The notes under the pieces were generated by a model. The model saw only the letters and a program-made list of their open reading frames with translations. It was not told the DNA's origin and ran no database searches. 32,000 nt of DNA, taken from Wallemia ichthyophaga EXF-994 (Eukaryota; Fungi; Basidiomycota). The DNA is taken from assembly GCF_000400465.1 (NCBI RefSeq), contig NW_008806295.1:30001-62000 (forward strand), given 5' to 3'. The position numbers and the translations under genes were made by a program. Position 1 is the stretch's first letter, and each line of letters begins with the position of its first letter. Below, in pieces: positions 76 through 23,500 of the stretch.

Positions 76-188
76 TGTTGATGATGGTGGCGATGTGAGT
101 TGTGAACAAACCGCGATTTATATTTTGCACGCAATGTTTCACTTTTTCAAATATATTTAGTGTTCACTCATCTCTACCTCGTACTTCC

Positions 189-1298
189 ATGTCCACTTCC
201 ACTTCATTAGATCATTTATCTCAATGTGACAGCATCATTTCTTCCATTCTGATTGACTTGGTTTGGGGTTTTAACGTTGTAAAGCCTGCTCAGTGTAGGC
301 TAGATCTTGGACACTCAAAGGACACTATCATCGACATGGTCAGTAGATTAAATTACAACACCGCAAGGCTCGATCAGGGTTTGCTAGAACTCACTAGCAT
401 AAAAGACTACCTCCGTAGAAAGAGGATCCTTTTCAAGAGCCTCTTTAAAGATCATTTACACGTTTATACCCTTCTATTCCACCCTTCCACTCCTTTTGAA
501 GTTTGTTTCAATAGAAGACTCTCATCCTTAACTCACAAAGAAGAATACTCTTTGATTGCTACCAAAAACATCCCCTCAAACACTCCAGTCAAGAATTGCC
601 TTGCTACCCTCACTAAAATCACGCCTAAACAAGACCAGTTCTTGACTGACTCTAATAATGACTGGAGTGTCCTCACTAGCCTTTCCTCAGGTACCCGCAT
701 CTTCCTTGGCCCTGCCAGATTCGCAAATCACGACTGCAATAACAACTGCCAACTCCAACGCACCAAAGACCACATCAACCTCGTCACGATAAGGTGTATC
801 CGTAAAGGTGATGAAATCCTACTCAATTACGGCCCGCACTACTTCGGAGAGAATAACGAAAAGTGCTTCTGTCGTTCGTGCGAGGCTGGCTGTAAGGGTG
901 CATTCCGACATGCCAATAGTGCCAATAGTGTTAATAGTCCAGTTGACAACCAACTCCGGACGAGATTCAATAGCTACATACGCTCAAGCACAAACAGCTC
1001 AACTAACCACTCGCGATCACGCTCCTTGTCCTCAGGGAGCTCCTCCCTCACTCCCCTCTCCTCAGCCCCTTCCTGTCTCGACGAGATGCTATGCCAGAAC
1101 AATCACTGCACAAATGAAAAATTACCGGATAGTGCTGAGTGCTACACTTGCGACATTCATCGTAGGATTTACAAAAACTCCTGGCCCATGCGTAGTCGCC
1201 CGGTCGATACCATCCACACTCCCACCAACCAGAACCAAGACTCAGAAGACTCAGCAGTCTCGGAAGACTCCACAGACTCTGACTTTATGAGTGAATGA
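189..1298 (+). CDS. set9: SET-domain histone H4K20 methyltransferase, Set9/KMT5-like (369 aa, intronless)
   Basis: First ATG of the ORF is at 189 (the track starts at a GTG). Motifs: IFLGPARFANHDC, GDEILLNYGPHYFGENNEKCFCRSCE (post-SET Cys), N-terminal DS..SSILID helix, and the C-terminal C..C..H...Y...WP motif seen in fungal Set9. Confidence 0.82.
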   Translation: MSTSTSLDHLSQCDSIISSILIDLVWGFNVVKPAQCRLDLGHSKDTIIDMVSRLNYNTARLDQGLLELTSIKDYLRRKRILFKSLFKDHLHVYTLLFHPSTPFEVCFNRRLSSLTHKEEYSLIATKNIPSNTPVKNCLATLTKITPKQDQFLTDSNNDWSVLTSLSSGTRIFLGPARFANHDCNNNCQLQRTKDHINLVTIRCIRKGDEILLNYGPHYFGENNEKCFCRSCEAGCKGAFRHANSANSVNSPVDNQLRTRFNSYIRSSTNSSTNHSRSRSLSSGSSSLTPLSSAPSCLDEMLCQNNHCTNEKLPDSAECYTCDIHRRIYKNSWPMRSRPVDTIHTPTNQNQDSEDSAVSEDSTDSDFMSE

Positions 1299-1391: not shown

Positions 1392-4300
1392 CTACTCCAT
1401 CATTCCCTGGCTGTGAGCGAGTTTGTAGAATTCGCTCGATGTGTTAGACAGCAGCGAAGTGGGGCTATCCGACTCCACGACGCGACCCTCATCCATAACA
1501 ATAACCTGATCATAAGCGCTAATAGTGGATATTCTATGAGCGACGCTAATAACCGTGACGCCCTTGAGTGCAGTTTTGAGTAACGCGAGCAGTCTCTCAT
1601 CTGTCTTGGAGTCCATATTTGACGAGGCTTCATCAAGTAAGACGATTCTACGTTTCTGGAGGAGGATTCTAGCGATGCAGAGGAGCTGTCTTTCACCTGC
1701 ACTAAACTCCATCCCATCCGTCGTCACCTGCGTATCGAGTTTGTGTTCTAAGTCATTGACCTGTTTCGCCATACCGACATGGTCCAGCGCCCGCCATATA
1801 TCCTCTTGGCTAGCCCCCTCGCATCCCAAAATGAGGTTATCTTTCAGCGACGCATGCAGCAGGAAGGGGTCCTGGCTAATGGTGCTGATGCGCTTGCGCA
1901 GTGTGTGTAGTGGCACAGTCGCTAGATCTACCCCATCCACGATAATCCTGCCTGAGCGCAGCGGCTGACCACGGAGGAGAGCGTAGATAGTCGATGATTT
2001 CCCGCTTCCCGTGCGACCACATATTCCCAGCTTATGTCCCGCAGGCAGGGCTATGTTTAGGCCGTCAAGGGCGTTACGCGGTGACGATGTGGCGTACTTG
2101 AGCGAAACGTCGTCGTATGTTACTGCCCCGCTCTCTGGCCAGCTGGGGCTGGGTTCGGTTGTAGTTGCGGATGCTAGCATAGCGTCGTTGTTGTCGCTCT
2201 CGTTGCCGCTTTCGTCGCCCGCTATTTCACGTGCTTGTAAACTCTCTTCACTCTCGAGTTGTGTAATCTCGACTATGCGTTCGAGCGAAACGACACCATT
2301 CTCCACCCTTGTCCATGCCAGAAGAAGATTGGTAAGCGAGGTTGCCATGCTGACTAGCTGGGATAGCGCCACACCGAGGTAGCCGGCGCTGGTGGAGTTA
2401 CGCAGTCCGACGGCTATCGCTGCTATCCCGATAGCTATGAATGCCGTTACGAGGTTGAGAAATGTGCGCAGGAATCTTATCCCAGAATCACGGTAGTACA
2501 TCGGTGCCTGCGACCGGTTGAGATGCCATTCAGAGATATCCTTAAACATTGCCGTTGACTTGAACGCACGGATCGTTACTAGACCAGTGAGGAGGGTGCT
2601 GAAAGACGTGTAGAGCGGTGTCTTAGACGAAATAGTCAGTCGCTGCAGCTGTCTGCTCGTCGCGAGATATACTCTCTGCAGCGACCAGTATATCACAGCG
2701 AGGAAAGGAACTGCTATGGCGAGCCATGGGACTGCAATCAAAATCAGAATGGCAGCTCCGACCACATACACCGCCGTCAACGACACGTCCAGCATCGAAA
2801 TAGGGAACGCGAAATCGGATATAAATATATCCGATCCCCACCGATTGATCAGCAGTGCTGAACTCGTTTTCTGGAAATACGTTACTGGCGCTTCGAGTAC
2901 ATGCCCTAGCATCTGCTCATGCATGCCTAAACTGGCGCGTGGGGCTGTGTACTGCGTGTACATCCACATCATGCAGAAAGAACTGATGAAAGCGGCAACA
3001 GTGAAGCCTGCATACCCACCAAGCCATGGTCGATGGTCGGTGGTGTTTGCGCTGGACCATTTTTCGAGGTATATCTGCGTACTGTTAGTTGCGGATAGAG
3101 CACAAACAGCTTTGCTCACCTGCAGACCAACTTCTACAGCATTGTAGAAAAAGAGAAATGCTACGCAAACTGTTAGACGTCCCCAGCCACAATGACGCAT
3201 GTAGAATTTGTACGGCGTCCATCCAAGATTTGCACTGGCGTCTTCTTCGTCAGGATCCTCTTCCGTATCCACCGCCTCGTATTCTTTTCCGTCAATACTC
3301 TTGTGCTGGTGCGATGGTTTTTCAGCCAGTGCAGGATCACCCAACTCATTGAGTATCTCCTCCTCCTCTGTCTCACTTTTGACATGAGTGATCTCATTAT
3401 CCTCTTCCAACTCCTTGGGTATTTCACCGATATAGCTCTTGATGTCGATTACATTCTTGTAGAGCTCGCGTAGCGATCCTTTGGCGAGGATAGATCCACT
3501 TTCCATAGCAACGACAAAATGTGCAGCTGTGAGGTGTTTGTGGGAGTGCGTTACCATAACCACCGTCCGTTTGCCAAGCATACCCCTCGCTCCGAACAGC
3601 GCATTAAAGACGTGCTTGGTGGTATGTGCGTCGAGTGCACTGAAACAGTCGTCCAGGACTACGAAAGAGGTGTGGCGACTTGCGTACAACGCTCTCGCTA
3701 ATGAAATACGCTGCTTCTGTCCACCACTCACTCCGCCGCCCTTTTCGCTCAGCTGGGTCAGATCGCCTTTGGACATTCTTTCGAAATCATAAACCAAGGC
3801 ACAGCTCTCAACTACCTTGTTGTACCATTCGTAATCGTATTCAGAATCCAGGATTATATTCTCGCGCACGCTCGTTGGCCAAATAAAGGCTTCTTGAGGG
3901 GCATAGCTGATTTTCGTGGTAGGTCCACCAGGCACCTTCCGCCTGCCTGTCTGCAAGTGCGTCTCGCCGAGCAGTGTTTTGGCAAGAATAGACTTACCAC
4001 TACCAACTGGTCCGACGACAATTGATAGTTTGTCTAGTGGGAAGTTGATGTCGATGTCTTTGATAAGTGGCTTGGCGTCAGGCGCTGATGATGCACTCGC
4101 ATTCACATTCCATAATGAAGGTGGCCCGTCGTAGTCTCTATCGGACTTCTCGTCTAGCGACGCCGATTTCTCGGTGCCCGTGTATTTCAGCGTCTCCGTT
4201 GAGCTTCGCTCTGAATTTGGCAGCTCGCCTCCCAAACTCACAGGCTTTTCTTCGAGCAGAAGGAACCCTGCAATGCGCTTCATGGAAGCCCAAGACGCGA

Positions 4301-6072
4301 CGAGTAGTGGGAAGCAATGTCCGACTGTTGAAATGGGGAGCGTTACCAGATTGACAATGGTGTATATCGTGAACAGTGTTTGTGGACGGATATCTCCGCT
4401 GATTCCTGCAAAAGTTCCGAGTGCAGACAGACCAGCGCAGTTAATTGTAGCTGATGAGAGGACAACTACTATCACAAGACGACGGTAGAAGGCCTTCAAA
4501 TTGTCCACTTCTTTCGCTCGGAGTGGGTTGATCCATTTCGGCATCACAGGCTCTAAACCGAGCAGCTTCGTGGGGATGATTTGTTGCATTACTGATCCTA
4601 TCACTGCAAGTCGACCCTCTGTGCTTCCCATCCAGCGCTTTTGAGCACCAGATACCTTCTTGCCGACGATAGATGTTACGGCAAAGAAGGCAATCATGAC
4701 GCAGAGTGGTGGAATCATCGCGTAAGTGGCCAGAGGAAGTGGTTAGTGAGTGTGCGTGATGTTATAGGCTGTACTCACTTTAAACCACAGGATAACGGCT
4801 GCGCAGGCAATCGAAACTAAAGCTGACCAGCATTCGTGGAAGAAAATGACACCTTCGACGACTCTCTCGACATCAACCGACATATACGTAACGGCACTCC
4901 CTCTACCTTGATTCTCTGCAACGGTTGATGCTAGTCTTACTGATTTGTCGAAAAGAACACTGACCAGTGCTGCTCTGTATCTTATAACCATTGCGTAAAC
5001 TTTATCCCAGTAGAGCGCTGTAGTGGCTGCCAATGAGAGATACACGATTGCATAAGCTCCAACTAAGCCCCAACCGATATTTGGATCTTGAGGTGTCTCA
5101 GTCTCACTTGAGTAGCTGTCGATGAATGACAAGATTGTGGAAACGAGAAATGGTTGAGCGAATGTGACAGCAACGTAAAGCAGCTTTGGTATTACTGCAG
5201 CGAAGAAAAAGTCATAGAATGCTATTATGGAAGGCATCAAGATTGGCTGAGTCTCTTTGCCGGATTTTGAAACCTTTCTTGAAGAGTAGAGGAGCTTTGT
5301 GAAGCGCTTTGTGGCATCATTGCTGCTTAGCTCTTCAGGTAGACCGAATTCATTAACGTCATCCAAGTTGAGTGCCCTTTTGAATCCAGAGTATAAGACA
5401 GGGTAGAGGAAAGTAAATAGGATGCGCGAAGGGATTGAGGAGGTTGGCTCAGTTGCTTTAGGCTGGCGGGATTGTGAGTGATTGGTATAATTGGTGCGTA
5501 CAACACACCAGAACTGATGACTTGATCAGCCACCTCTTCTCGATCAACTCGGCAAAGAAAAGACAGCAAGTTGAAGCGAAGAAGACGCAGTATCCGGCAA
5601 AAAAATCATCACCAATCAAGTTGGCGTTGACGAAAGATCTCAGCTGAGTTGCGCTAAACAAGGAAGCTGTTGCCAAGTGAGCACTGATCAATGTCGATGG
5701 AGCATATGCTCGTGTGTGCTGAGCGTAGGATAGAGGGAGAAGTATGACTGAAGAAACCAGTTGCATAGCGTATGCAGCAGTTGCAGTATTGGTGTTGAAG
5801 TGATCGTAATGAAGAACACTTGCAATTGATCCGATCTGAATAAGGATAAGGATCAGCTTCGTGACCGATAGAAGATCGAATCTGTGCTTTGTAATTCTGG
5901 TGCGTGTCTTTTCTATCGCCCCCATTAACACAAACTTGGCCAAAGCTGCGAATACGAATATTGCCAGTGGAAGACACCACATCAGTCTCCACTGGAAGCC
6001 TAGCGATATGTCCATATAACGACATTGGCTTTCTGCCACAAAGTTAAACTCTCCCGGACAAAGTTTGCTCAT
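1392..6072 (-). CDS. ABCC/MRP-type ABC transporter (~1513 aa), TMD0-TMD1-NBD1-TMD2-NBD2
   Basis: Joins three track ORFs. Introns: 5508-5463 (46 nt, GTGTGT..CAG), 4778-4731 (48 nt, GTGAGT, branch CACTAAC, ends TG rather than AG) and 3119-3075 (45 nt, GTGAGC..ACTAAC..CAG, in-frame without a stop). NBD1: GPVGSGKS, VSGGQKQR, LDDCFSALD. NBD2: GRTGSGKS, FSAGERQLLC, LLDEASSNMD. Confidence 0.92.
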
Positions 6073-6319
6073 GTGTTGATGATTTGATCGATAGAGGATC
6101 TTAACTGATAATTTTTGATAACTGATCGTACCTGACTAGGGTTGTGTTCGCAGCAAACTCCGAAATTAATAAAATGGAAAACTAAAGCCGCTGATGGTAT
6201 TCGATCCTTTATCATATGGCCGCAGGCTTTTTAGAAACCTTATTCGTGTTTTTCCCGATTTTATCAGATTATCTTCGGGGTTTCCAATTTGATCGCAAGC
6301 TTGATCAGCTTAGCCGAGG
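6073..6319. promoter_or_regulatory. Divergent promoter (ABCC / A-domain gene) with a cluster of GATA sites, SreA/Urbs1-type iron-repression candidate
   Basis: 247 bp contains TGATAA at 6106 and 6116, TTATCA at 6209 and 6261, and TTATCT at 6269. 6261-6269 is the reverse complement of ATCTGATAA, which fits the SreA consensus ATCWGATAA. Confidence 0.6.
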
Positions 6320-8700
6320 ATGCTTGATAATTATACACACAACCCAATAAAGAGCCTTGGAACGCAGTCAAGAGTTCCAGAGCATGTCCCACGGCACTAC
6401 TCACTCGATATCACCGGTCCAGCTGGTCAAATTTCGAGCGAAATTGAGAAACTCAGCAGAGTCGCATACACTGTGCTTCTGATGAAGTATCTTGACACGC
6501 AGGATATCCTATTGGGTGAGACTTCCGTGGATTACATCGGCGATCCTGAAGCCACGCTGATTCAGCCAATCCGCGTGCAGCTGGAAGGAGGGGAATTATT
6601 GAGCCAAATATCCCAGAATATCGATCAGCAGCTATCTGCAAACATTCCGCTATCAAACGACGACGCTAGACTTGAACTGGGTGTAAAGGACCACGAAACA
6701 CCTCTACAGGCACTGTTTGTATGGGGAGTTGATTTAGTTACGTGCAGGCAGCATAACAGCCTGCTAATGGGTGGATACCTGTCTCACAATGGCTACACTT
6801 TGTCTGTCTATAGCGACGGCAGTCTGATATCATCCACCTCGCTCGGCGTTCTCCTCAATCAAGTCAAGGTGGTGCTGGAGAGGCTGCTGCAGCACCATGA
6901 GAACCTTTCAAATGTCCATATTGGGGAGGTGCTCAAGCCATTCCCTAAAAACCTCGCCTCACACGCTCAAAAGACACTGGACATGTCTCACCAACGCTTA
7001 GTAGTCGATTGGTTGTTCGATAACGCAGCAAGCAGGCCTGAAAAGATCGCCCATGAATGCTACACCGACCTGGACTCGCCACCTTCTCTACTCAGTTGGA
7101 ATGACTTTAACAGGCGCTCAAACCAACTTGCTAGGTGGCTTGTAGAGCACAAACGGGTGCAGCTCGAGGACAGAGTGGGTCTGTCGCTCCCGCGCTGCCC
7201 CGAGTTCTATATAGCTATGGCTGCTATTCTCAAGGCAGGTGGCTGCTACACGAGTGTGAGTCTTAGTCTGAGCCTGGGTCGATGAGAGCACACACCACTC
7301 ACACAACGCACAGATAGACCCAGAGCTACCCGAAGAGCGGAAGAAGTACATTGCAAAAGACAGCGCGTCCAAGGTGGTATTCACAACTAGCGAAAATCAG
7401 CACATATTCCCTCTTATAGCTGTAGACACGCACGACGCGTCGCTGTGGAGGCTAGTCCACACACTCAGCCCCTCCAATTTCAACTGCGCACAAGCTGACA
7501 GCCTGGCTTACCTTCTCTACACGAGCGGGACGACGGGGAATCCGAAAGGATGTCTCATCGAGCACAGAGCGCTGTATTGGGCGATGATAACTTTCGGTGA
7601 CTACCCCATACCGATCAGCAACCCAGACAGCGATAAGCGGCTGGCAATGGCTTCCTTGGCGTTCGACGTGCATATTTCTGAAATCACCCAAAGCTGGCAT
7701 GAAAAACTAGCATTGGTGACGGTCCCGCGGGCTCAGCTACTGGGCGATCTAAGGGAGTACATTGTGCGGATGCACATAACGCATCTGGGGATGGTGCCGT
7801 CGATGATCGAGGCGCTGCTCGAGACGCCCGATGGTCTCCCCCTCAAGTATCTCATTTCTGGTGGTGAGAAGATAACGCAAAATGTAAGATAATCCAATCA
7901 CCTTTAACACACCACAAACCCCTGACACCTCACAGCTGCTCGAAAAGTGGGCTAACCAACCCAACCTCGTCCTCGCGAATTTCTACGGCCCGACTGAGCT
8001 GACTATTGGGATATCAGCGCGCAAGGTGATGGCGCACGATACAAAGGAGAATGTCGGCAAAGTGTTTCCCTCTTGTGACGCATTCGTGGTCGACAGGGAT
8101 ATGAACATTGTCCCATTAGGTACACCAGGCGAGCTTGTCGTGGAAGGCGTACTGGCAGCGCGCGGATATCTCAACCTGGACCACCTCACCGCCAAGTCCT
8201 TTGTCAGGTACCCCACGCCTCAGAGCTGGGCATACAGGACGGGCGACTTGGTGCGTATGACGCCCGATCACTCGATCGAGATCATGGGCAGGATCGACTC
8301 GCAAGTCAAGTACCGTGGTGTGCGCTTAGAGACAGAGGGCGTGTCGAACATACTCCGCTTGGCATCTTCATCCGTGGAGCTCCTGGCGACGACGCTCATC
8401 ACACAGCACGCTTCTCTCAGTCAGCAAGTGCTCGTCAGTTTCGTCGCGCCGTCTCATTCTGGCGTCGGGGTGGTAGACAGGCGCACTACAGCGCCGACTA
8501 TCAAATATGACAGCGGCGCACTAGTAAACACTCTCAAGATGGCTGTCGATCGAGAGCTGCCTGTTTATATGCGCCCTGCTTACATTATACCGACAAATTT
8601 CATCCCGCTCACCCTCAACGGGAAATCGGACAACAAAGTCCTAGCCCAGCTTTTCAAGACAACGCCAATGCAGTCCCTACTAAAGTCACAGAGGGCGTGA
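6320..8700 (+). CDS. NRPS-like protein (756 aa): degenerate condensation-like N-terminus plus one adenylation domain of the fungal siderophore-synthetase type; no thiolation domain
   Basis: Introns 7256-7313 (58 nt) and 7884-7935 (52 nt) fuse three ORFs in frame. A-domain core motifs: A3 AYLLYTSGTTGNPKG, A4 FDVH, A5 NFYGPTE, A6 GELVVEG..ARGYLN, A7 YRTGDL, A8 GRIDSQVKYRGVRLE, A10 NGKSD. The stop follows about 20 codons after A10, and there is no GxDS phosphopantetheinylation motif. Confidence 0.88.
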
Positions 8701-8803
8701 TGCAGTGTGCAAACGCGGTAAAGTTTCTGACTCGATATAATGATGCATAATTTTGGTAATTACAAAGTTATATTGTATGGTATGGTATAGCGCGCGCCAT
8801 CCG

Positions 8804-11800
8804 CTAGTCGTCCTCCTCATCCTCCTCGATGACGGCCGCGGTCGCGACTGAAGGTCTCCATTTCTGGTGGTTGGAGGTATTTGGAGGAGTAGGAGACGTC
8901 GAAGTGGCGTTGGAGTTGGAGTTGGAGTTAGTAGTATGGCTACTGCCAGTGCCGGTGCCATTACCATCACCACCACTCCTTGGGAATTTGAAGTCGCTCA
9001 TCGTTTCCCTTGCGTCACCATTCTTCCTATTATTCGTCTTCTTGGACTTCTTGAGCTTTTTCACACCCTCGATCTCATCTTCGTCCGAGTGCTCCGTGAC
9101 GCTGACGTGTTCTTCGGCAACACTCGACTCAAACTCTCCAATAACCGCACTGGCATCGCCCTGTCCGATTCCGCCAGCGAAGTCGTCCTCATCCACCCAC
9201 TCCTCTTCCTTGTGGGAATGAGTGTGAGTGTGAGAATGGGTGTAGGTGTGAGTGTGCGGGTGAGTGCGTGACCGTGCATGCGCGAGTGCATTTGACTTTG
9301 ACTTGCTTTGCGCATGCCCACCTGCCGCTGTATCGAAAGTCAAATTTTTTGTTGGGGAAGTCCTGCTGTAGTCGAATTTGCTAGCTTTGAGGAGCGCGAA
9401 TGATTTCATTGGTGGTGAATGAACGCTGATTGGTGCAGGTGGGCGTTTTGATGCGAGGAATAGTGTTTTAGAGTGTTGTTGGTTAGTCGAGGAGTGGGGG
9501 AGGTGGTTTGTATGAGAAGAGCGGGTGTGCACCTTTGCATCGCCATCACCTTCACCATAGCCATCGACTTCACTATCGCGCAGCCCCAACCCGACCACCT
9601 TCTCGCCATTCTCCAACGAACTTGTCGACGTGCTCCGCGAATGTCTGCTGGTTGGCAGGGGAGACGAAGGAGCCCTCACATGGCGCACGCGCTGCAAGGA
9701 GCTCGACGACCCGCTTCTGTGTCTACCTGCGCGACCGAACGACGTATTCGAGCTGGGATTAATGCCCATACCCATACTCATCCGTCCACTCACACTACGC
9801 GCGCTGCTTACCGAAGACATGGAAGGCGACTTGGCGTGCTGTCCTCGCCCAACAACTCCCCCGCTGCTAACCCGCCGGTTCATCGCGGCCGATGGCGACC
9901 CGCTCTCGAAATGCACCGAGATACTCGAGCGGCGCGAATGGACGGAGGACGAGCGACGGGAGTGTGTCAAGGAATGAGATTGTGAGTGAGGCTGCGAGTG
10001 GGGCTGCGATTGCGTCTGCGGTACCGCCATAGCAACAGTTTGCGGTGATAGCATGCTTTGAGTGCTGCTACTTGACGCCCGTCGTCCATTACTCGACTTA
10101 CGCCTGTTGCGGCGATTTCTTCTGGCCTTGGACTGCGTCTGACCGCGAGTAGGTCCCTGTTTCGTGCGTGCGTTGCGTCTGCGCGGTGTAAGGGTGTTGC
10201 TGTTGCTGTTATGCGAAGCAGACCGCCGCATTTGCACCGTCGATGGGACCCCTTCAGATTCAGCTGCAGTTTCAGCGCCTTTGAGCTGACCCTGCGTCTG
10301 CTTCTGCTTCTGCTTTTTGGGCGTGGTCTTACCTTTCTTGCGCTCGCGTTTATCGTCGGTGAACCCTGTGGTGGTTTTGTGAGAAGAATCGCGCGTTAAG
10401 AGCTCACTTACAACCACGGAAAGCGTCCAACAAGTTTTTCTTGTCCTTTTCCTTGGTTACGGGTGAGTTTTGAATGTTAGGAGTGTTGTGCAAGTCGTGT
10501 TCAGACGCCGCCCGAGGTGAGTCAGTTGGTAACTGATTGAGCGAAGCTGTGGAGTTGAACTGGGCAGCATGTGAGATAGGAGGCGTTGTACTAACACTCC
10601 CACTCCCACTCCCGCTCACACTCAAACTCACACTGACACTATCATCATTACTCCCACTCCTTTCGTCGCTTTTCTTTCGAGGTAGCATACTCCCGCTAAG
10701 AGCAGTAGTGGCGCGCTGTAGCATGCTGATAGAGCTGCTGCGGCTCTTAGTCTTGTTAGGCGAACTAGGGGCGGACGTCTGCGGCAAGTTGAGCTGTAGA
10801 CTCGATGTTGACGCCTCGGTGGGTGGTGTTAGTGATAAACCCGATTCGTTGAGATCTGGCAAACTTCTTTTGGAGAAATCTGCGCGTTGGTCGCTCATTT
10901 TGAGTTTTTGTTTGTCTCTCTCAATGTCTCTATCTTTTTCTTTCTCTCTTCTATCCTTCTCCTCCCTCTCTTTTTCCGCTTTCTCCTTCTCTACTTTGTC
11001 GCGCTCCTTCTCTCTCCTCTTCTCCCTCTCCTCCTTCTGTTTACGCGTGTTGATCATGAGATACTCCTCTGAGTCGCGCCGCTCGCCACGCTCACCCCTT
11101 TCGCCAAGGCCGACGCCCTCCTCCTCGATACGAGTGAGATGTTCACGCGTATCGAGATTCTGCTTGCGGAGGAGCCACCACAGTCCACCAGACGCATCGC
11201 ACGCGTGGTTGATAACTGAGTGCTTAATCTGCCCGATATCGAACCCCAGCTGACTAAGCGACTGAAGGAGAGCGCGTTCCCACTCTTCCTCAAACGGCTG
11301 TGCGTGTTGAGCGGTGCACATTTCGAGATAATTCGGTTCTTGCGGGTGGAAATGGTGAAGATCGTCTGCGTTGGACTGGCCGAGATTGAAATTGGGATTT
11401 GGATTGAAGTTGACACTTTCCATCGATCCCACCTTGTAGTGTTCACGGAGAGAGGTGGTAGACGGGATGCGCGACGCGACAGGTGTAAGCACGGGTAAGT
11501 CGGACATGGTCGAGCTGACGCTGCGCCGTTTGGTGCGCGATGGCGTCCGTTGGATCGGGGGTGTGGATGCACCTTCGCGCTCACTAGATAGCGTGCGCAC
11601 CATGCCGCGCTTGAATGAACCACCTGAACGACGGGGGAGGGCTATCCCGGGTATACTCTCTACACTCAAGTTTCTAGTCATGCCGCTGCTTGTGGTCGCA
11701 GGGACTAGTCGTCGCGGTGGCTCGTCCAAGTGGTTCACATCGCTCACACCCTCGAATACCTCCGTCGCTTCACTCTCTCCTTCGCTTATCTCGCTCACGT

Positions 11801-12916
11801 GTTTCTCGTCGTACGCGTAGCTGGCGTGCTCGGCTGTGTGCTCGAGCTTGTCATGGAGAGTGTGCAACGGGGTTTGCTGTGATGGGAAGCGGGTGAAGAA
11901 TGGATGGGCGAGGATTTGTTCGATACTCGGACGATTTTGTGGGAGTGGTTGAAGGATTGCGGAAATTAGGTCACAAGCATCTGAGACATGTGAGAAAAGA
12001 AAGACGAGAAAAGAAAAAACGCACCAGCTGAAAGGACATCAGTTGGATGATAGTATTCTCCTTTCAACACCAACTCTCTCATTTCATCCTCGTCATCATC
12101 GTCGAAAGGAAGACCACCAGTGAGAAGAGCGTAGAGGATAACGCCAGAACTCCAAATATCAGTTTCTGGGATGTCAAGTGTGAGTAAGGAATTGTCGAAT
12201 GCAAATGAGAAACCCACGCTTTCCACCATATTTTTCACCGCGAAGCATTTCAGGAGAAGCGTACGCAGTTGTGCCGCACCAAGTACTCATAAGATTCCCA
12301 GGGCCATCATCAAACTCCCTTGCAAAGCCAAAGTCGCCTAATTTAACGTTTCCGTCTTTATCGAGGAGAATGTTCTCGAGCTTCAAGTCGCGGTGAACAA
12401 CACCATTAGAATGAAGGTAGTGCAGCGCCAGCATAAGCTGACCGAAAACTCTCCTAACCTCCACGTCGGACAGTCTTCCTTTGTCGACGAGATAATCGAA
12501 CAGCTCACCGCCATCACATAACTCGGTGACGAGGTGGATGTCGTTCTCGGTGGCGACTATCTCAAGGAGTTGAGCGATGTGGGGGTGCGATAGGCGCCGA
12601 TAATGGTGCAGCTCTCTAACCAAAGCGCTGAGCTGAGTGTGGTTTTTTGATACGCTCTTCACAGCAACGCGTGCACCTTTGATGAGGCGATGAGTGGAGA
12701 GACGCACGATACCATAACTGCCACTGCCTAAAGTACGGCCGAGAGTATAATTGCCAATCGTACGCAAGGCAGGGGAAGTTAAATCTTGAGTTAGATTCTG
12801 ATAAGCCTGAGCGAGCTGGGGGTTTTTAGATATAAACTGAAATAAATCAGAATTCCCACCTGTGCTTTTTTGTTCTTGTTGTTCCTTTCATTGCTCGTAA
12901 TCACGGTCTTGCTCAT
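8804..12916 (-). CDS. Ser/Thr protein kinase, CAMKL (Ppk16/MARK/SNF1-related) family, with UBA-like segment and long low-complexity tail (1308 aa)
   Basis: True ATG at 12916 (MSKTVITSNERNNKNKKAQ|LAQAYQNL..IGNYTLG). Introns: 12859-12816, 12217-12166, 12024-11981 and 10411-10366; spliced length is divisible by 3. Kinase motifs: GSGSYG, VAVK, HRDLKLEN, DFG, CGTTAYASPE, DIWSSG. Confidence 0.9.
9211..9283 (-). repeat. Imperfect CACACT-type hexamer repeat in the kinase CDS encoding an alternating-His tract (HARSRTHPHTHTYTHSHTHTHSH)
   Basis: Plus strand reads gagtgtgagtgtgag...gtgtgagtgtgcgggtgagtgcgtg. Confidence 0.7.
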
Positions 12917-12975
12917 CGCCCAACAAGAAGGTTGATGACGTAAATTTGTGAAAATAAAAATGAAAATTTATTCTT

Positions 12976-14344
12976 TTACTTTATATAGTTTGATAAACCT
13001 TTAATACGCTCACCAGCTTCATCGAGTATATCAGCCTCTTTACAGAATGCAAATCTGATGAATTGTTCACCTAGATGTTGGTTTGATAGACCATAGAACT
13101 GAATTTTGGTTAGAAAACATAGTAAACTCTCACTCCACTCACATCAGATGGTGGTATGGCAACAACTCCGAACTCATGTGCCATCCACCACGCAAATCTA
13201 AAGTCACGCGTACGTGTCTTGATATTCTCTGGGAATGGATAGTCCTCTGGGAAGTTTACTTTGCTTATATCTGCTAATATGAAGTATGATCCTGCTGGCT
13301 TGGTGTATGGTAATCCAATCTGGTCAAGATGCTTTGTGAGCACATCACGACGTTCTTGATATTCCTTCCTTTGAGTTTCAAAGAAGTTGTTCTGATCAGC
13401 CTCCTCGAAACCAACAGCGGTACCTTCTTGAGCTAAGCTATTAACACAGAAAACTATTCTCATTGTAGTTGCGAGTGTTGCCTTGACCAGATCTGGATGT
13501 CCAATAACCCAACCAACTCTCCATCCAGTAGCTGCGAATGTCTTACCTGCTGAACCAACAGTAAGAGTTCGTTCCCACATTCCGGGAACATCGGCGATTC
13601 TATCATGTGTAGCGTTGTCAAATGTCAATGACTCATAAACTTCATCCGAGATTACGAGAAGATTGTGTTCGATGGCGACATTAGCAATAGCTTGAAGTTC
13701 TTCACGAGTAAAAACCTTTCCAATTGGATTGTGTGGAGTGTTGAATATGATTGCTTTCGTCTTTGGAGTGATTGCACCAATCAGCTCATTGATATCAATC
13801 TTCCAATCATCGCCTGTAGAATTCCTTGTAGGATCACCGTGGAATCTGATAGGAACATAAACTTCTTTGCCACCATTATAACGAACGTTTGGCATGTACT
13901 GATCGAATGCAGGTTCAAACAAAATGACCTCATCGTCTTGTTCAAGGAATGCGCCCAAAATTGAGTAAATGGCTTCATTAGCGCCTGCTGTAACGATAAT
14001 TTCAGATTCAACATCCAATTTACGCCCATTAAGGGATTTGAATTGCTTTGAAAAGTGATTTGAGAGTGCGTTACGAAGACGTGGTCTGCCCTTTGGATGT
14101 GAGTAATGATGTACAGATGTATCACTATCGATAGCCTTTGTAATAGCACTTCTAATATAAGTAGGTGGCTTCCAGCTCATAAATCCTTGCCCTAAACTGA
14201 GTGACGTCTTGGGCATAACGCTGCGGAAGTTTTAGAAGATTTTAAACATGACAAATAAAGAACCGACAGTGGACTGAACAAAGACCAAACATCCGCAGAC
14301 TTGTTCAACTCAAATTTAATCCTTGAACTCGGTTTTATAGCCAT
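12976..14344 (-). CDS. BNA3: PLP-dependent class I/II aminotransferase, kynurenine--oxoglutarate / glutamine transaminase K type (Bna3-like; 425 aa)
   Basis: ATG at 14344 (MAIKPSSRIKFELNKSADVWSLF). Introns: 14267-14221 (47 nt) and 13142-13099 (44 nt). Motifs: LGQGF, Y....G.PRLR, VTAGANEA, NTPHNP.GKV, SDEVY, GSAGKTFAATGWRVGW (PLP lysine), C-terminal IRFAFCK. Confidence 0.9.
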
Positions 14345-14368
14345 GGCGTTGGAAGAAGGAGTACAAAA

Positions 14369-14908
14369 TTAGTTGGATTCATCTGAACTGGATACAACGT
14401 CATCGACTTCTTTATTTGATGTGTCTGGTGGCGTTAGTCTTTGTAAGCGGATAATCCTCAACTCACTCCCCAAATAATCATTCAAGCTCATTGGCTGGGT
14501 ATTTGAACTGGTATTTGCTGTAACAGGAATTGATGATTGAGGTGGATCATCATCTTCATCTGAAATATCCTGGAATCCATCCAATAGCTCCTTGTCCAAG
14601 AAATCATCCACGTTCTCCAGCTGTTGAAGCGTATACTCGTGTTTTATTGGTATTATCCTAACTATCCCACTATCATCATCATATTCCAAGCAATAATTGT
14701 AGTCCTTTTCCCCCTTTGTATGCCCTATATACGATAAACCACCTTCCTCGACTCTAACCTTATCTTCCTCCGTTGAAACTTTGATCCCTTCAAAGCTCCC
14801 AGGCTCACTTGGATAATCGAAAATATTTAATCCTTCCTCGTTGATTTCTATCGCTGTGTCTCGAGGCCAGGTCATCAGCGTATCTGAAGCAGCGCGTAAA
14901 TACGTCAT
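14369..14908 (-). CDS. Small acidic hypothetical protein (165 aa if spliced); faint resemblance to ELL-associated factor (EAF) N-terminal domains
   Basis: 179-codon ORF containing a probable in-frame 42-nt intron at 14466-14425 (GTGAGT..ACTAAC..CAG). The EAF similarity (Y.G......YCLEYDDDSG.VRI) is by eye and weak. Confidence 0.55.
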   Translation of the reverse strand: MTYLRAASDTLMTWPRDTAIEINEEGLNIFDYPSEPGSFEGIKVSTEEDKVRVEEGGLSYIGHTKGEKDYNYCLEYDDDSGIVRIIPIKHEYTLQQLENVDDFLDKELLDGFQDISDEDDDPPQSSIPVTANTSSNTQPMSLNDYLGSELRIIRLQRLTPPDTSNKEVDDVVSSSDESN

Positions 14909-15169
14909 TTCATTGAGGAAAAACTAAATAGGAAATTATATAAATCGAATGTAATCATCAATTTATTCTAATTGACAAACGCCAAACATTCAAAACCTAT
15001 ACAAAAGAAGACGTTTAGCAGGACCTGGTGTCGTCCTTTAGAGATGGGCATTATATCGATGTATTCATCCTTTGAGCATCTTTTCATTCCTATACACTCT
15101 CCCGCACACTCCCCCTTCTAGAATCCCCCCTGAATCGTCCACTTTACCGTACCTAGGAACAAATTGCAA

Positions 15170-15356
15170 CACTTACTCAAATCAAATCCGATAAAATCTG
15201 ATACCGCCATTAAACTCATCTAGCTCTACTCATCCCAAAAACATCTCGTTCCTTACAATCCGATTGAATCCGATAATTTTTTAACCGCTATCAGATAAAT
15301 CAGCCTAATCAGATCATCTATCAATCAGACAACCAACACCCATAAAATCTGGAAAG
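15170..15356 (+). promoter_or_regulatory. Promoter/5' leader of the siderophore importer with a tandem ATC[ACT]GA(TAA) array
   Basis: ATCCGATAA at 15186, ATCTGATA at 15196, ATCCGATT at 15258, ATCCGATAA at 15268, ATCAGATAA at 15290 (exact ATCWGATAA), ATCAGATC at 15308 and ATCAGAC at 15324. Confidence 0.68.
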
Positions 15357-17335
15357 AGTAAGTGAGCCAAAGGCCTGGATTGTAGCAAATCTAACACGCC
15401 CTAGTGAACCCTCCACCTGGCTACGCTGATGAAGCTGCTACTCCACATGTTCCCCCTCTCAATGTTCGCCAACAAGACAAATTCGGCACCCAGGCAGGTA
15501 CTTTGAAAGCTATAGCTGCCAAGCAAGTATCCAACAAAGCCATGATGGTTATCCTCATCTATTTCCTTGGTCTTGCTGCTTTCATGATGAATTTGGATCA
15601 ATACACCAACTACACCCTCCTCACTCAAGCCTTTACAGACGCTAATAACGTTCAAGCTCAATATCAAGTTGGTGCTGCAACTGCCATTCTTCTTGCTGTC
15701 GGTAAACCGTTCTTTGGAAAAATGTCAAATGTCATCGGTCGTCCTGAAGCTCTAACTGTCACGCTTTTCTTCATTGTTCTCGGTTATGTCGTTACTGCTG
15801 CATCTGATAAGCTTGTATCAGGTCTCGCCGCAGGTCAAGTTTTCTGGCAACTTGGCTTCTCCGGCTTCCAAATCCTCCTCAACATTATTGTCGCAGATAA
15901 TACAAACCTCCGTTACAGAGGATTTTGGACTGGTATGATCAACGTATGGACTTTTGTCCTTTTCGCCTTATCCTCTCCAATCATTAGTGCCGTTAAATCA
16001 GGTTTAGGTTGGAGGTGGGCTTTCGGATTGGAAGCTATTTGCTACCTTCCTGCCTCTCTTCCAGCAATTCTTGTTCTCTTCTTGAACCAATACCGTGCTA
16101 AGAAGGCTGGTTTAATCAATTATCAGGACCAGCCACTCACTTCTGGTCCATGGAAGTCACGCATTTACCAATTCATTGTCCAGCATGATGTCATAGGTCT
16201 ATATCTCCTTATCGCTACTCTCTGCTACATTTTCTTGCCAATCATTCTCGCTGGTACGAGTGCCCTTCTAGCATGGGACAATGCTTACGTGCCTGCCTCG
16301 ATGGTCGTTGGAGGTTTCATCATTCTCCCCGCTCTCATCTACTGGGAACTGAAATGCGCTTCCTTCCCAATAATTCCACACTACTTCATCAAAAATATCA
16401 ACATCGTAATCACGTGCCTGATCAACTTCTTTGACTTCATTTGCTTTTACCTTTCTTATCAGACGCTGAGTAACTACATGGCTGTGGCTGTAGATTGGTA
16501 TACGGATTTAGAGAATGGTGAACCTCGTTTGAGCGGCGACTCTAACTATTATTCTTACTGCCAGAACATTAGTTTAACCTTCTTCGGTATTGCTTGGGGT
16601 ATCATTGCCTCTGTCTTCAAACCTAATTGGAAGTGGTCTGTTGTTGTCGCACTCTGCATTAGACTACTCGGTGTTGGATTGATGTTGTACGCACGTGACA
16701 ATCGTAATCTCGGTGCACTAGTTATGACGCAAGTTTTACAAGGTGCTGGTGGTGGTATCGCTGCAATCGCCACGCAAGTAGGTGCGCAGGGCAGTGTTCC
16801 TCAGCAACAGATGGCTCTTGCTACCGCTGCCATTCTTCTTTTTGCAGAAATTGGTAATGTTGTTGGCCAATCCGCTTCCTCGGCCATCAATTCTGCTTTC
16901 CTTCCACAGATGATCGCAGAGCAATTCCCATCATGGAGTGCAACACAAGTCAACAAATACGTCAGTGCTCCAATGTCCGCTGTCAAACTTGGTCCAGTCG
17001 GTACAGAGCAGAGAGATAAAATGATACAAGCATTCTCAAACAATCAGCGCAAACTCATCATTCCAGCCATCGTTTTCGGCTGCGTGCCTATCATTCTCTC
17101 CTTATTCCTCAAAAACTTCAAGCTCGATGAGCGCCAAAACGCAGTAGAAGATCTCGATGAAAACGGCCATGAAGTGCTGGCGTATGATTCAGAACGTACA
17201 AATACCCATGCAAATGGAGATTTAAATGAAAATGCGCGCGATAGCCACTCTGAGGCCGATGAGGATCACAAGGATGATCACAAGTCATCTCCAAAGGAAA
17301 CCAATCCTAATGGTGGCCATGAATTGTCCCATTAA
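15357..17335 (+). CDS. MFS siderophore-iron importer, ARN/SIT1/Str family, 14-TM type (643 aa)
   Basis: Start codon is split as A(15357) | intron 15358-15404 (GTAAGT..TCTAAC..TAG) | TG. Family-like motifs: KP...K.S.VIGR.EA, Q..NIIVAD.TNLR.RG, GWRW.FG, VGAQGSV, LF..IG..VG, LDERQN after the last helix. Confidence 0.88.
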
Positions 17336-18481: not shown

Positions 18482-18553
18482 TCGGTTATGTGGTAGGGGC
18501 TATCCTCCCAGATTCTCATTCTGGAGACCCGGGTTCGATTCCCGGTAACCGAA
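18482..18553 (+). tRNA. tRNA-Glu (anticodon CTC), intronless, 72 nt
   Basis: Acceptor stem TCGGTTA/TAACCGA; anticodon arm CCAGA-TTCTCAT-TCTGG; T arm CCGGG-TTCGATT-CCCGG. The D stem is imperfect. A T5 tract follows at 18557-18561. Confidence 0.93.
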
Positions 18554-19511: not shown

Positions 19512-19592
19512 GGTTCGATGGTCTAGGGGTATGATTCTCGCTTTGGGACACCAATTTGCGAGAGGTCCAGGGTTCAAATCCCTGTCGAACCC
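19512..19592 (+). tRNA. tRNA-Pro (anticodon TGG) with a 9-nt intron at position 37/38 (19548-19556)
   Basis: Acceptor GGTTCGA/TCGAACC; anticodon stem CTCGC/GCGAG; loop TT-TGG-G|acaccaatt|T; T arm CAGGG-TTCAAAT-CCCTG. The spliced length is 72 nt. Confidence 0.93.
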
Positions 19593-20558: not shown

Positions 20559-23500
20559 ATGCTGGCGACAAGCACAGCTAATAATTCATCTTTAACTCCT
20601 TTGCCAGTGGAATACGCGCTACCTTTATCAACTCAAAACGATTTGGATTTAAATTACCCAGAAGATGAGCAATCCAACTTTGCGATTTCAATTCCTCATC
20701 CAATACACGATCATCATTTGTTAATTGGTAGATTATCAAATAATTACAAAACCTTAGTATTATCTAGTATACCTCCATTAGCACCTTCTTTATCGATAAA
20801 TCTACATTCACCCGCTATACCTACAATTGGTTTATTCTACGACGATGAAGCTGAATCCGTTCATTTGTTACTCGTCACTCAATCCTCCGCTTTACTCAGA
20901 TTGTCTGTACCTCTTTTCGTACTCAATTCACCTTCCTCTGAAAATCTTCCTGATGGTTGGGCAACTGAATACATTCTCAACTCTGTGGAATCTGATTCAT
21001 CGCAGATTTCAACTGTTAACCCAGTTGACTTGAATTCAGTGTTGTTGGGTTTGGTTGATGGTACTCTAGTCCTCTGCGAACAACCTAGAGGCGATAGAAC
21101 CCTACTTGGTATGGGTCTAGTTAGTTATTATGAAACTCAATGGTCGGAATCTCAAATGCGTCACTCTTCCATCTTATCGTCTGTCAAATCTTTCCTCCCA
21201 AACCCTTTCTCCTCCTACGCTAATTCTGCTATTGGTCCTCCCACTCAAATTATCTCTGTCTCATCTCACATCACTGAGAACTCTGCTTTCGCTTTCACCC
21301 TCTCAAGAGATAGAAAATTACGCGTTTGGTCTTTGATTCACAGATCTTGCATCAGAACAATTGCCCTGGGTGATCAATACGATTTTATTCCTGGCGATCC
21401 ACGCAAGCTCTTGACCACTTACTCTACAGATATCGATGATGATGATGGTATTGGTTTCATATCTGTTCATCTCCCAGACTATGCAACTCCTGGCTTCTAC
21501 ATTTACTCCTTCGAAATCAATAGAAACGCTGGTTTGGGTGAGCTTAACCTGATTGCTGAGCGCACAAGTGAACCTGGCTTGGAATTGCACGATATGTGCA
21601 TTATTAACCATGGTCAACCTAAACTCTGGGCTCTGTATGAGAAATCTGGTATTCCTCTCATCAAGCACACTCTTCTCAATGAACTTACGACTGATATGCC
21701 ATCTCAAATTACTCCAGCTTCATGGGAGGTTGTTACACAAGCACCTATAACACCCCTCGATCCTGCAGCTTTCTCTGATTACGTTTTGAGCGCAGCTGCG
21801 GGTACTTCCATCCCTGACATATTCCTTGATGTCATTTTCACTCCAGGTGCTTTCAGTCCTCTGACTATCTCTCGCGCTATTGTCGAGTATACGTCTCTAA
21901 TTATCAACGAGATTGCACCAGAGAACAGACCAGAAAAATTGCTTGATCCTCCAGTCTACGATAACCTCGCTCAACACTCCGCTGATGTGGTTGGATGTCA
22001 CATTCAGCTTGAGTATGATGCCGCTTCTGGTGTCCCAAGAACCGAAGAACACCAGCAGAAGGTCAAGTTTGAGTGGTTGCGATTCGCATCTCTCGTCGGT
22101 GAGACTCATGGTCGCGCTCAACTGCCTTTGCATTTGGCTATACACGCTCAGCAACCTCAACAAATCTTGGTCATACAATCTGAAGCTATATCTGCTCCAG
22201 TTATAGAGGATCAATGTCAGACTATTCGTCGTATCACTGATCCCAACGTCTCTTCGGATGCTGTGAGGGATTTCCTCGAGTTAGAAGAGTCCACGGTTGA
22301 AAAATTCTGCTCTGAGGAGCTCGTTTCTCGTGAGAGCAGAGAGTCTGTTTTGCGTGTTTTTATGCTAGCCAGATCACTCATTCAATTAATATCACTGGAT
22401 AAACTGAGAAATATCCAAGATGACATCTTATACATGGCAACTAACCATCTCAACGACTCTCCAGAAGCATTATTGAGGGATCTATGGAAAAACGTTACAC
22501 AGGATGCCACTGTGGATCCAAACACCAAAACTCTCTTACAAAGCGCAAAAGAAACAGTTACAAGTAACGTGGATGCTTTCTTAGTCGCATTAGACAGCGC
22601 AATAGAGATTTTGACGGACGTCGGATACACGTTTGACGAATCTACTACCAATAAGTCGACGCTTACCGATGACCTCTCAAAGACTCTCGTCTCCTCTACA
22701 CTCATAAATCAGCTCAAAGATCGCTACACCCTGTCAAGAGATCTAATGATACTTGTTTTGTTTGTCGATTCATGTGACCTCTTGGGTAGCGATCCAGAGT
22801 CAGCTATGAATCGCACGCTTAATGTATTCCACAGAAGTGCGCTTCTTCGTTGGATCGCTCTTAGAGGCGTTTCTGAAGAGCCAAACTACCCTAATGAAGA
22901 GGGTAACAAAGCGGATGACGGCCTTACAAACCAATTTGGCGCTATGTACGTTGCCAATGTATCGTCACTCGAGCATTATCCAAAACTCCCAGCTAGCTCA
23001 CTCATTCATGCGATACTACGCACACCTTCGTACGCACTGATATCTGGTGTATCATTGTTCGAGGATGACAGTGCAGCCACCTACTTACCAACACCACGAG
23101 CAATTACACACGCTGCTAACTACTTCCTTAAGCACATTCATTTGCTCATCGATGCTAACTTTGTTGAGTGCAACGCTGCTGATACTAAGTTTGGCAAGAT
23201 GCTTTTTGATTGTGGATGGCATAATCTCGTCAATGATTATGTTCAGTTCTGGCCAGGCAGCGCGGGGATGTCTTACATTGATGCTCTGGCTAAAGTCGAG
23301 AACTGCGAATTTGAACAAGCCAAAGGAGAATTTGAAGTGGCTGCAAGTGGCATGATGTCTAACGATGAGACACTCAAAGCAGTTTTACCAAAAGGTGTCG
23401 ACTCGCTTGCAAAGTTTTATGAACATGTTACCGTAACTTTCGAAGCAGCTCAATTTGACGAATATATATCACACTTTGCTCAGTATGCTCTTGATGAAGT

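Follow-up and report, generated by a model that had tools for sequence, protein, structure and literature searches.

What can the adenylation domain of a nonribosomal peptide synthetase (NRPS) do when it is encoded without a carrier domain, and what is the role of a transporter gene that faces it across a short promoter? This question is raised by a locus of the halophilic basidiomycete Wallemia ichthyophaga EXF-994, studied here as a stretch of 32 kb (the window) together with 16 kb of its upstream flank. In the window, the gene of an adenylation-only (A-only) protein of 756 aa (6320-8700, plus strand) lies head to head with the gene of a long-form ABCC transporter with the layout TMD0-TMD1-NBD1-TMD2-NBD2 (6072-1392, minus strand), and the two start codons are separated by exactly 247 bp (6073-6319). 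The open reading frame (ORF) of a major facilitator superfamily (MFS) protein, with the Pfam domain MFS_1, starts 6.7 kb past the A-only stop codon (15404-17335, plus strand). The first-pass annotation described these genes as a minimal siderophore-type unit, consisting of an NRPS reduced to one adenylation (A) domain, an exporter sharing its divergent promoter, and an importer further on, with GATA clusters in both promoters and neither an ornithine N5-oxygenase nor an acyltransferase in the window. Each of these descriptive elements was recovered, and the absence of an ornithine N5-oxygenase or Acetyltransf_8 gene extends to the 16 kb upstream. The grouping of three genes into one unit was not supported. 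What the locus contains is a two-gene module and not a three-gene cluster: a derivative that was split off from a siderophore synthetase and has no carrier domain, together with a transporter partner of its own.

Two GT-AG introns (7256-7313 and 7884-7935) interrupt the A-only gene, and the spliced product matches the W. ichthyophaga protein annotated as E3P91_03426 at 100% identity. The sole Pfam domain of the product is AMP-binding (aa 234-581, 1.5e-67), with no Pfam match to PP-binding or Condensation. The complete A domain (7010-8700, plus strand) holds the sequences YTSGTTGNPKG, NFYGPTE, YRTGD, GRIDSQVKYRG and NGK. The A3 P-loop, A5, A7, A8 and the A10 lysine of NRPS adenylation domains are thus all present, and these motifs are invariant or nearly so across a family alignment of 21 sequences. 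The stop codon follows 24 residues past the A10 lysine (K732), and the next gene, on the opposite strand, ends about 100 bp away. The N-terminal part of about 230 aa (6320-7009, plus strand) gave no Pfam match. When the AlphaFold model of the protein (mean pLDDT 85.7) was compared with solved structures by Foldseek, the condensation-adenylation didomains 8hlk, 6p1j, 5ja2 and 6p3i aligned over about 780-810 columns and pure A domains over about 530. Since the didomain matches are longer than those to isolated A domains, the first 230 residues are modelled as the C-terminal lobe of a condensation (C) domain, from which the catalytic N-lobe and the HHxxxDG motif are absent. This N-terminal region is present in every member of the family, full-length synthetases included.

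The substrate pocket was read from the motif anchors and the family alignment, following the position scheme of PMC2644324 Table 2. The residues D430, V431, S434, G471, I493, G495, F518, I526, G527 and K732 form the code DVSGIGFIGK, which is found in three Wallemia species. The A-only proteins of Agaricomycetes, as well as Ceraceosorus and Sympodiomycopsis, have DVSGVGFIGK, and Marasmius has DVSGVGFVGK; the codes of full-length relatives are identical to the A-only code or differ at no more than 3 positions. The third A domain of Schizosaccharomyces pombe Sib1 (DVLDIGFIGK) has been assigned to N5-acyl-N5-hydroxy-L-ornithine (AHO), and glycines at positions 301 and 331 mark the AHO rows (PMC2644324). 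The A-only code equals that of Sib1 A3 at 8 of the 10 positions, with G301 and G331 kept. Among single-domain structures in the PDB, the best match is the AHO-activating SidN A3, with 246 bits vs at most 208 for bacterial domains. The earlier assignment to the siderophore type is borne out by this match and by a code shared with synthetases in hydroxamate clusters. Because pocket codes are considered poor predictors of fungal substrates by Bushley et al., the authors of PMC2644324, we infer AHO as the substrate from the sequence and go no further. The enzyme itself is likely still active, as judged from its sequence.

The origin of such a protein can be followed through its relatives. Proteins of 500-775 aa that carry AMP-binding alone occur in W. 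hederae (77% identity), W. mellicola (76%) and Armillaria (50% over the full length), and further in Peniophora, Schizophyllum, Cylindrobasidium, Rhodocollybia, Hymenopellis and others. The models of the shorter relatives are mis-called at the N-terminus, and the first 230 residues were found upstream in every locus by tblastn; several Agaricomycete models of 548-646 aa are too short at this end. The 575-aa "acetyl-CoA synthetase-like, partial" protein of Meira miltonrushii turned out to be a piece of an uninterrupted 2547-aa frame (locus L005, 9377-17017), which carries an A domain, three carrier (thiolation, T) domains and condensation domains. With the T-C part of this frame as a query, proteins of 2430-2560 aa were retrieved from Ceraceosorus, Sympodiomycopsis, Marasmius and Suillus, and the synthetase of Marasmius oreades shows the explicit order A-T-C-T-C-T-C. 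This is the order of type VI synthetases, a type covering the basidioferrin and coprinoferrin synthetases (PMC10192304). Residues 1-754 of the A-only protein align to the first ~780 aa of these proteins, those of Meira and Suillus included, at 36-44% identity. In Marasmius, the gene of the full-length NRPS is divergent from an Acetyltransf_8 gene, and the Ceraceosorus cluster brings together genes for an ABC transporter, a hydrolase, an Acetyltransf_8 protein, an enoyl-CoA hydratase, the NRPS and an MFS protein. By its sequence, the A-only protein derives from the first third of a monomodular hydroxamate synthetase of the order A-T-C-T-C-T-C. It retains the homologous A domain with an AHO-type pocket; the three carrier and three condensation domains on the same polypeptide are lacking, and at the Wallemia locus no gene of an ornithine N5-monooxygenase or N5-transacylase is clustered with it.

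The reduction to a single A domain appears to be old. When the A region was placed in a neighbor-joining tree with 200 bootstraps, A-only proteins from Wallemia and from Agaricomycetes fell into a single clade (98% support), which holds all the ABCC-paired ones. The full-length Marasmius enzymes belong to the sister group (90%), and the Ustilaginomycotina enzymes fall outside. Every A-only protein ends within 1-2 residues of the same alignment column, which in the full-length enzymes marks the beginning of the linker to the first carrier. By tblastn, remnants of carrier or condensation domains were found neither in the window nor in its 16-kb upstream flank, and none lay up to 10 kb from the gene in five other genomes. 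Compared with W. hederae, the ratio of nonsynonymous to synonymous substitutions (dN/dS) is 0.07, with saturated dS, and full-length frames are kept in many W. mellicola strains and several Armillaria species. The sequences fit a gene that was duplicated and truncated once, long ago, and then kept in use over a long time. The idea of a decaying cluster, offered by the first-pass annotation as one of the options, is rejected for the A-only gene in view of this dN/dS and of the intactness of every catalytic motif. Another candidate origin, recent copying from the NRPS adjacent to the Schizophyllum gene, was discarded because the identity to the A domains of that NRPS is only 29-31%. The HMMER search with the A-only protein was swamped by multimodular NRPSs with additive domain scores and does not inform its distribution.

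The pairing with the transporter also marks this lineage. The ABCC gene stands head to head with the A-only gene in seven genomes, namely W. ichthyophaga, W. mellicola, W. hederae, Armillaria fumosa, Schizophyllum fasciatum, Rhodocollybia butyracea and Cylindrobasidium torrendii; the contig from Peniophora is too short to show whether an ABCC neighbor exists. The paired ABCC proteins outside Wallemia (Armillaria, Schizophyllum, Rhodocollybia and Cylindrobasidium) are 44-48% identical to that of the window, TMD0 included, and orthologous to it. The full-length NRPS genes of Meira and Marasmius have no such ABCC neighbor, and the ABC transporter of the Ceraceosorus cluster is a short ABCC with only 26% identity to the window protein. 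Thus, the long ABCC is a partner of the A-only lineage specifically, and its descent from a fer6-type transporter, as suggested by the likeness to the Ustilago maydis cluster, is not supported. The conservation across genomes supports a functional pairing over a chance one, and by these comparisons the two-gene module is older than the split between Wallemia and Agaricomycetes. Two neighboring genes may be noted as possible hydroxylase partners. The Armillaria A-only gene has a FAD_binding_3 monooxygenase gene as its tail-to-tail neighbor (locus L002, 12752-14935), and an FMO-like gene with a weak Lys_Orn_oxgnase match lies about 10 kb from the Rhodocollybia pair (locus L007, 1-44).

The ABCC product contains the Pfam domains TMD0_ABC, two ABC_membrane and two ABC_tran. 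Its nearest solved structures are MRP4, MRP1, ABCC2 and Ycf1 (E 1e-150 to 1e-124), and the alignments to Ycf1, MRP1 and ABCC2 run end to end. The translation holds GPVGSGKS/VVLDD in the first and GRTGSGKS/VLLDE in the second nucleotide-binding domain, that is, the degenerate Walker B of NBD1 and the canonical NBD2 of long-form ABCC/MRP proteins. Identity to the ABCC proteins of W. mellicola and W. hederae is 82-86%, and dN/dS vs W. hederae is 0.04 with saturated dS. The exons lie at 6072-5509, 5462-4779 and 4730-1392 on the minus strand and encode 1528 aa if the second intron, intron B, is removed. Intron B (4731-4778, minus strand, 48 nt), delimited by alignment with W. mellicola and W. hederae, begins with GTGAGT, has a CTAAC branch site and ends with TG. 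The acceptor is AG in W. mellicola and W. hederae and, as a fixed change, TG in W. ichthyophaga, and the intact product requires a non-canonical splice. Retention of the intron would bring in an in-frame TAA at 4745-4743, and use of the next AG downstream would delete 24 residues of a membrane helix. In the annotation of EXF-994, as in those of at least 10 more strains, the gene is broken into parts of 427 aa and 1108 aa. The two halves are equally constrained, and the W. ichthyophaga branch shows no acceleration of rate. Either the change of the acceptor is recent, or the TG is used in splicing, or the two ABCC parts work together.

The divergent promoter (6073-6319, serving both strands) is the densest WGATAA cluster of the window. 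It holds 5 copies, with a sixth at 6325, out of 47 in all 32 kb; at least 5 copies in any 247-bp span arose in only 2 of 1000 first-order Markov simulations. A double TGATAA lies at 6106-6121, a single TGATAA at 6209 on the minus strand, and TTATCAGATTATCT at 6261-6274, with ATCTGATAA inside it when read on the minus strand. All three Wallemia species keep the double TGATAA element, CTGATAATTTTTGATAA. An extended site, ATCWGATAA, has been defined for the repressor SreA and fits the known sites of Urbs1 and Fep1 (PMC2610380). In the shared promoters of the seven species, 9 copies of this site were counted in 2453 bp vs 0.089 expected from the rest of the loci, an enrichment of about 100-fold. 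Six of the seven promoters contain it, and that of W. hederae has no exact copy. In W. ichthyophaga, the shared promoter holds one ATCWGATAA and four further WGATAA, and the MFS promoter one ATCWGATAA; on sequence grounds, both promoters thus have the type of site that marks the SreA/Urbs1/Fep1 regulon. Ten further copies occur outside the shared promoters. Four of them lie upstream of the Meira NRPS, in the promoter between the Marasmius NRPS and acyltransferase, and ahead of the W. hederae and W. ichthyophaga MFS genes. By comparison across species, such a distribution argues strongly for iron-type GATA control of the pair and makes it plausible.

The MFS gene has a GATA-rich block of its own upstream of the ORF (15190-15320), in which CGATAA occurs twice, together with ATCAGATAA at 15290-15298 and GATCATCTATCAATCAGAC; three GATAA fall within about 105 bp. 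ATCAGATAA is common to W. ichthyophaga and W. hederae, and the GATCATCTATCAATCAGAC block is invariant in all three Wallemia species. The start of the gene is uncertain, because the long ORF has no in-frame ATG before residue 47. The annotated model of 658 aa adds tiny upstream exons from 15044, which places the GATA block inside a predicted intron or in the 5′ region. The protein is named "Siderophore iron transporter 3" in EXF-994, and relatives in Mycena are named "drug:H+ antiporter". With the MFS from the siderophore cluster of Ceraceosorus it shares 29-33% identity, and no relative was found in the PDB. Its position is the same in W. mellicola and W. hederae, and dN/dS vs W. hederae is 0.08 with saturated dS. 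A second MFS gene, encoding a protein 45% identical to the first, lies about 8 kb upstream of the window start, beyond SET and PP2C genes (locus L011, 10001-11914), and is also seen at locus L001 (1-724) and as W. hederae E3P99_00639. In Wallemia, the pair is therefore flanked on either side by a siderophore-transporter-like gene. The neighborhoods of two further MFS paralogues of W. ichthyophaga hold only housekeeping genes and no biosynthetic cluster. The MFS of the window is probably a siderophore-iron importer. Unrelated genes separate it from the pair, its linkage is limited to Wallemia, and the MFS near the Armillaria pair was rejected as a relative, having no match to it. On these points the proposed three-gene unit lacks support, and the MFS is better described as a probable Wallemia-specific accessory of the pair.

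How would the module work? The most likely mechanism, which is far from proven, is the loading of a partner synthetase in trans, and its main rival is a carrier-free ligase. At low iron, a GATA repressor of the SreA/Urbs1 type would leave its sites and both genes would be derepressed. The A-only enzyme would activate AHO as the adenylate. Carrier domains of a siderophore synthetase from another locus would receive it in trans, and the most plausible acceptor is a synthetase of the ferrichrome type in which the A domain for AHO has degenerated. The hydroxamate, finished or still an intermediate, would be carried by the ABCC over the plasma membrane or the vacuolar membrane, and in Wallemia the two flanking MFS proteins, whose genes have similar promoter motifs, would re-import the iron-loaded compound. 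The full chain of trans-loading, ABCC transport and iron-GATA derepression is given about an even chance of being correct.

An example of an arrangement that would suit this mechanism is found in Schizophyllum, where an NRPS of more than 4569 aa begins 470 bp downstream of the A-only gene. With the A-family profile, the P-loops of its A1 and A2 are intact. Its third A domain scores about 24 bits over the first 143 profile positions only (locus L004, ~21270-22630), and its P-loop reads EGAHASSTQA where TSGTTGTPKG is expected. Because the A-only gene adjoins an NRPS with a dead A3 P-loop, trans-loading is favored. In Peniophora, the 3′ end of a gene encoding a terminal C domain lies immediately before the A-only gene. 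The third A domain of Omphalotus Fso1 is reported to be highly diverged, with degenerate core motifs (PMC2644324). In this lineage, A domains for AHO load remote carrier domains, as in the two-protein assay of SidC A3 and T5 (PMC10192304). A separate "siderophore peptide synthase" is described for Wallemia, along with other "unknown NRPSs" (PMC5201246), and the A-only protein of W. mellicola, XP_006960464, is one of the latter. Two T/C-only proteins were uninformative: P0194 is closest to ascomycete synthetases (38%), and P0207 matches everything compared only weakly (20-25%). Of the split or trans-acting assembly line envisaged by the first-pass annotation, the principle is thus indirectly supported by the Schizophyllum neighbor, and the partner was not found in Wallemia.

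Several observations weigh against trans-loading in its full form. The Meira T-C-T-C-T-C query had no Wallemia match in the protein collection, in a word-limited search that does not prove absence, and five of the seven pair loci have no NRPS within 10 kb. Genes for SidA or an N5-transacylase were sought at the Wallemia locus only (window and 16 kb upstream) and were not found there. For the Schizophyllum A3, the reading comes from six-frame translation of an intron-rich gene without splicing, with only part of the domain inside the locus. If the partner had a working AHO domain, an A-only enzyme with the same pocket would be redundant. The caution of Bushley et al. applies to the assignment of AHO, GATA sites serve nitrogen and light regulators too, and the W. 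ichthyophaga ABCC lacks a canonical acceptor at one intron, so that a full-length protein may not form. The A-only enzyme could be a carrier-independent ligase that passes the AHO adenylate to a free nucleophile, such as another AHO (giving a dipeptide or diketopiperazine-type dihydroxamate), CoA or an amine, with the ABCC transporting the product in a self-contained minimal chelator system. This is unlikely, though it accounts for the transporter being the sole invariant neighbor of the A-only gene and for the lack of T or C domains near five of the seven loci, and amide-forming A domains are known in SidC A2, ORF19, PacU and NovL/CouL (cited in PMC10192304). However, the pocket and the A8 and A10 motifs are the same as those of the carrier-linked relatives, and no mark sets the protein apart from thiolation-competent domains. 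Moreover, the gene adjoins NRPS genes in Schizophyllum and Peniophora, and the half condensation domain has no catalytic lobe. The stronger version, in which the pair is a self-sufficient carrier-free machine whose A domain itself joins hydroxamate amino acids and whose ABCC removes the product, is considered improbable.

It is also conceivable that the locus has no part in siderophore metabolism, the enzyme using another amino acid, the ABCC acting as a general detoxification or vacuolar pump, the GATA sites serving nitrogen or other control, and the MFS being unrelated. The weakness of pocket codes in fungi (PMC2644324), the antiporter names of the Mycena relatives, the lack of orthology between the long ABCC and the Ceraceosorus transporter, and the missing hydroxylase and acyltransferase genes in the window and the 16 kb upstream would all agree with it. 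Against this stand the match of the pocket code to synthetases embedded in hydroxamate clusters and the presence in the promoters of the extended ATCWGATAA, which goes beyond HGATAR, is enriched there roughly a hundredfold and also marks the promoters of true siderophore NRPSs in the same set of loci, and this explanation is judged quite doubtful. Least probable is that the pair is a remnant of a lost siderophore cluster and functionless in W. ichthyophaga. The TG acceptor and the split annotations of the ABCC would suit such decay, as would the absence of biosynthetic partner genes within about 48 kb and the general poverty of Wallemia genomes in secondary-metabolite clusters (PMC5201246). 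This fate is highly improbable given dN/dS values of 0.04-0.08 for the ABCC, A-only and MFS genes, the equal constraint on both ABCC halves and the unaccelerated branch, full-length open frames in many strains, and a truncation point and pairing kept since before the Wallemia/Agaricomycete split. Trans-loading of a synthetase encoded elsewhere is thus preferred among the readings considered.

The remaining genes of the window, whose first 5952 bases are identical to EXF-994 contig KE007245.1, frame the module. A SET-domain gene (102-1298, plus strand) precedes the ABCC gene. Between the A-only and MFS genes lie a protein kinase gene with long low-complexity tails (12767-8804, minus strand), a class I/II aminotransferase gene (14216-13110, minus strand) and a small acidic ORF (14908-14369, minus strand). 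The kinase tails are very long, serine-rich and of His/Thr-repeat type, and they account for a strong AT skew at 10-11 kb and, on the other strand, for several long but spurious ORFs. The W. mellicola and W. hederae models fuse the kinase to the aminotransferase, in W. mellicola also to an EAF-like gene, which looks like a mis-annotation. Past the MFS gene, tRNA-Glu(CTC) and tRNA-Pro (18482-18553 and 19512-19592, plus strand) lie in an AT-rich, ORF-poor gap, and the tRNA-Pro call of 81 nt leaves room for an intron. After them follow genes for Nup120/160, a nucleoside transporter and kinesin-3.

Fungal siderophore synthetases are regarded as single giant polypeptides, and a recent explanation of their odd, non-linear domain orders is that A domains can load carrier domains at a distance. 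If trans-loading is true, the module would be the first split form of such a siderophore system in fungi and would answer how Fso1-like ferrichrome synthetases work with a degenerate third A domain. If no partner exists, it points to carrier-free chemistry, and a carrier-free machine would be a siderophore route without any thiolation or condensation domain. The A-only family is now annotated as "acetyl-CoA synthetase-like" or "hypothetical" and is often mis-modelled, and genome-mining tools that require a carrier domain would miss it. The protein would also offer a compact enzyme for reprogramming hydroxamate assembly lines.

Among known systems, the type VI synthetases CsNPS2 (basidioferrin) and Cpf1 (coprinoferrin) were compared through relatives of the same architecture. 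These relatives are homologous to the A-only protein over its full length, at the 36-44% identity given above. They share the same or a near pocket code and, in the promoters of Meira and Marasmius, the iron-type motif. Unlike them, the A-only protein has none of the three carrier and three condensation domains, ends 24 residues past A10, and has as its partner gene an ABCC instead of an acyltransferase or ornithine monooxygenase. The ferrichrome A cluster of U. maydis consists of the NRPS fer3, the ABC transporter fer6 and the MFS fer7 under repression by Urbs1. The Wallemia locus resembles it in combining a siderophore A domain, an MRP/ABCC-type transporter, a probable siderophore-type MFS and GATA-repressor sites, and the cluster of the Ceraceosorus relative is exactly of the fer kind. 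However, the Wallemia locus has no multimodular NRPS, enoyl-CoA hydratase or acyltransferase. Its ABCC is a long form with TMD0, to which the short ABCC in the smut-type cluster is no orthologue, and the MFS stands apart from the pair.

Fso1 of Omphalotus olearius and the Schizophyllum NRPS are candidate acceptors, since their degenerate third A domain would need AHO activation from outside; both are complete multimodular synthetases, of which none was seen beside the Wallemia pair. On the transporter side, Abc3 of S. pombe is an iron-regulated, Fep1-repressed vacuolar long ABCC with TMD0. It is not known to be paired with an adenylation enzyme; the ABCC of the window shares the long form with TMD0 and putative control by a GATA-type iron repressor. 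Stand-alone A enzymes are familiar from bacteria, where those of the EntE/DhbE type load their carriers in trans. Like these and like ORF19, PacU and NovL/CouL, the A-only protein has an A domain with no carrier on its own polypeptide. Unlike them, it is fungal and, according to its sequence, belongs to the amino-acid-activating NRPS class, carries the remnant of a condensation domain, and is tied to the gene of an ABCC transporter.

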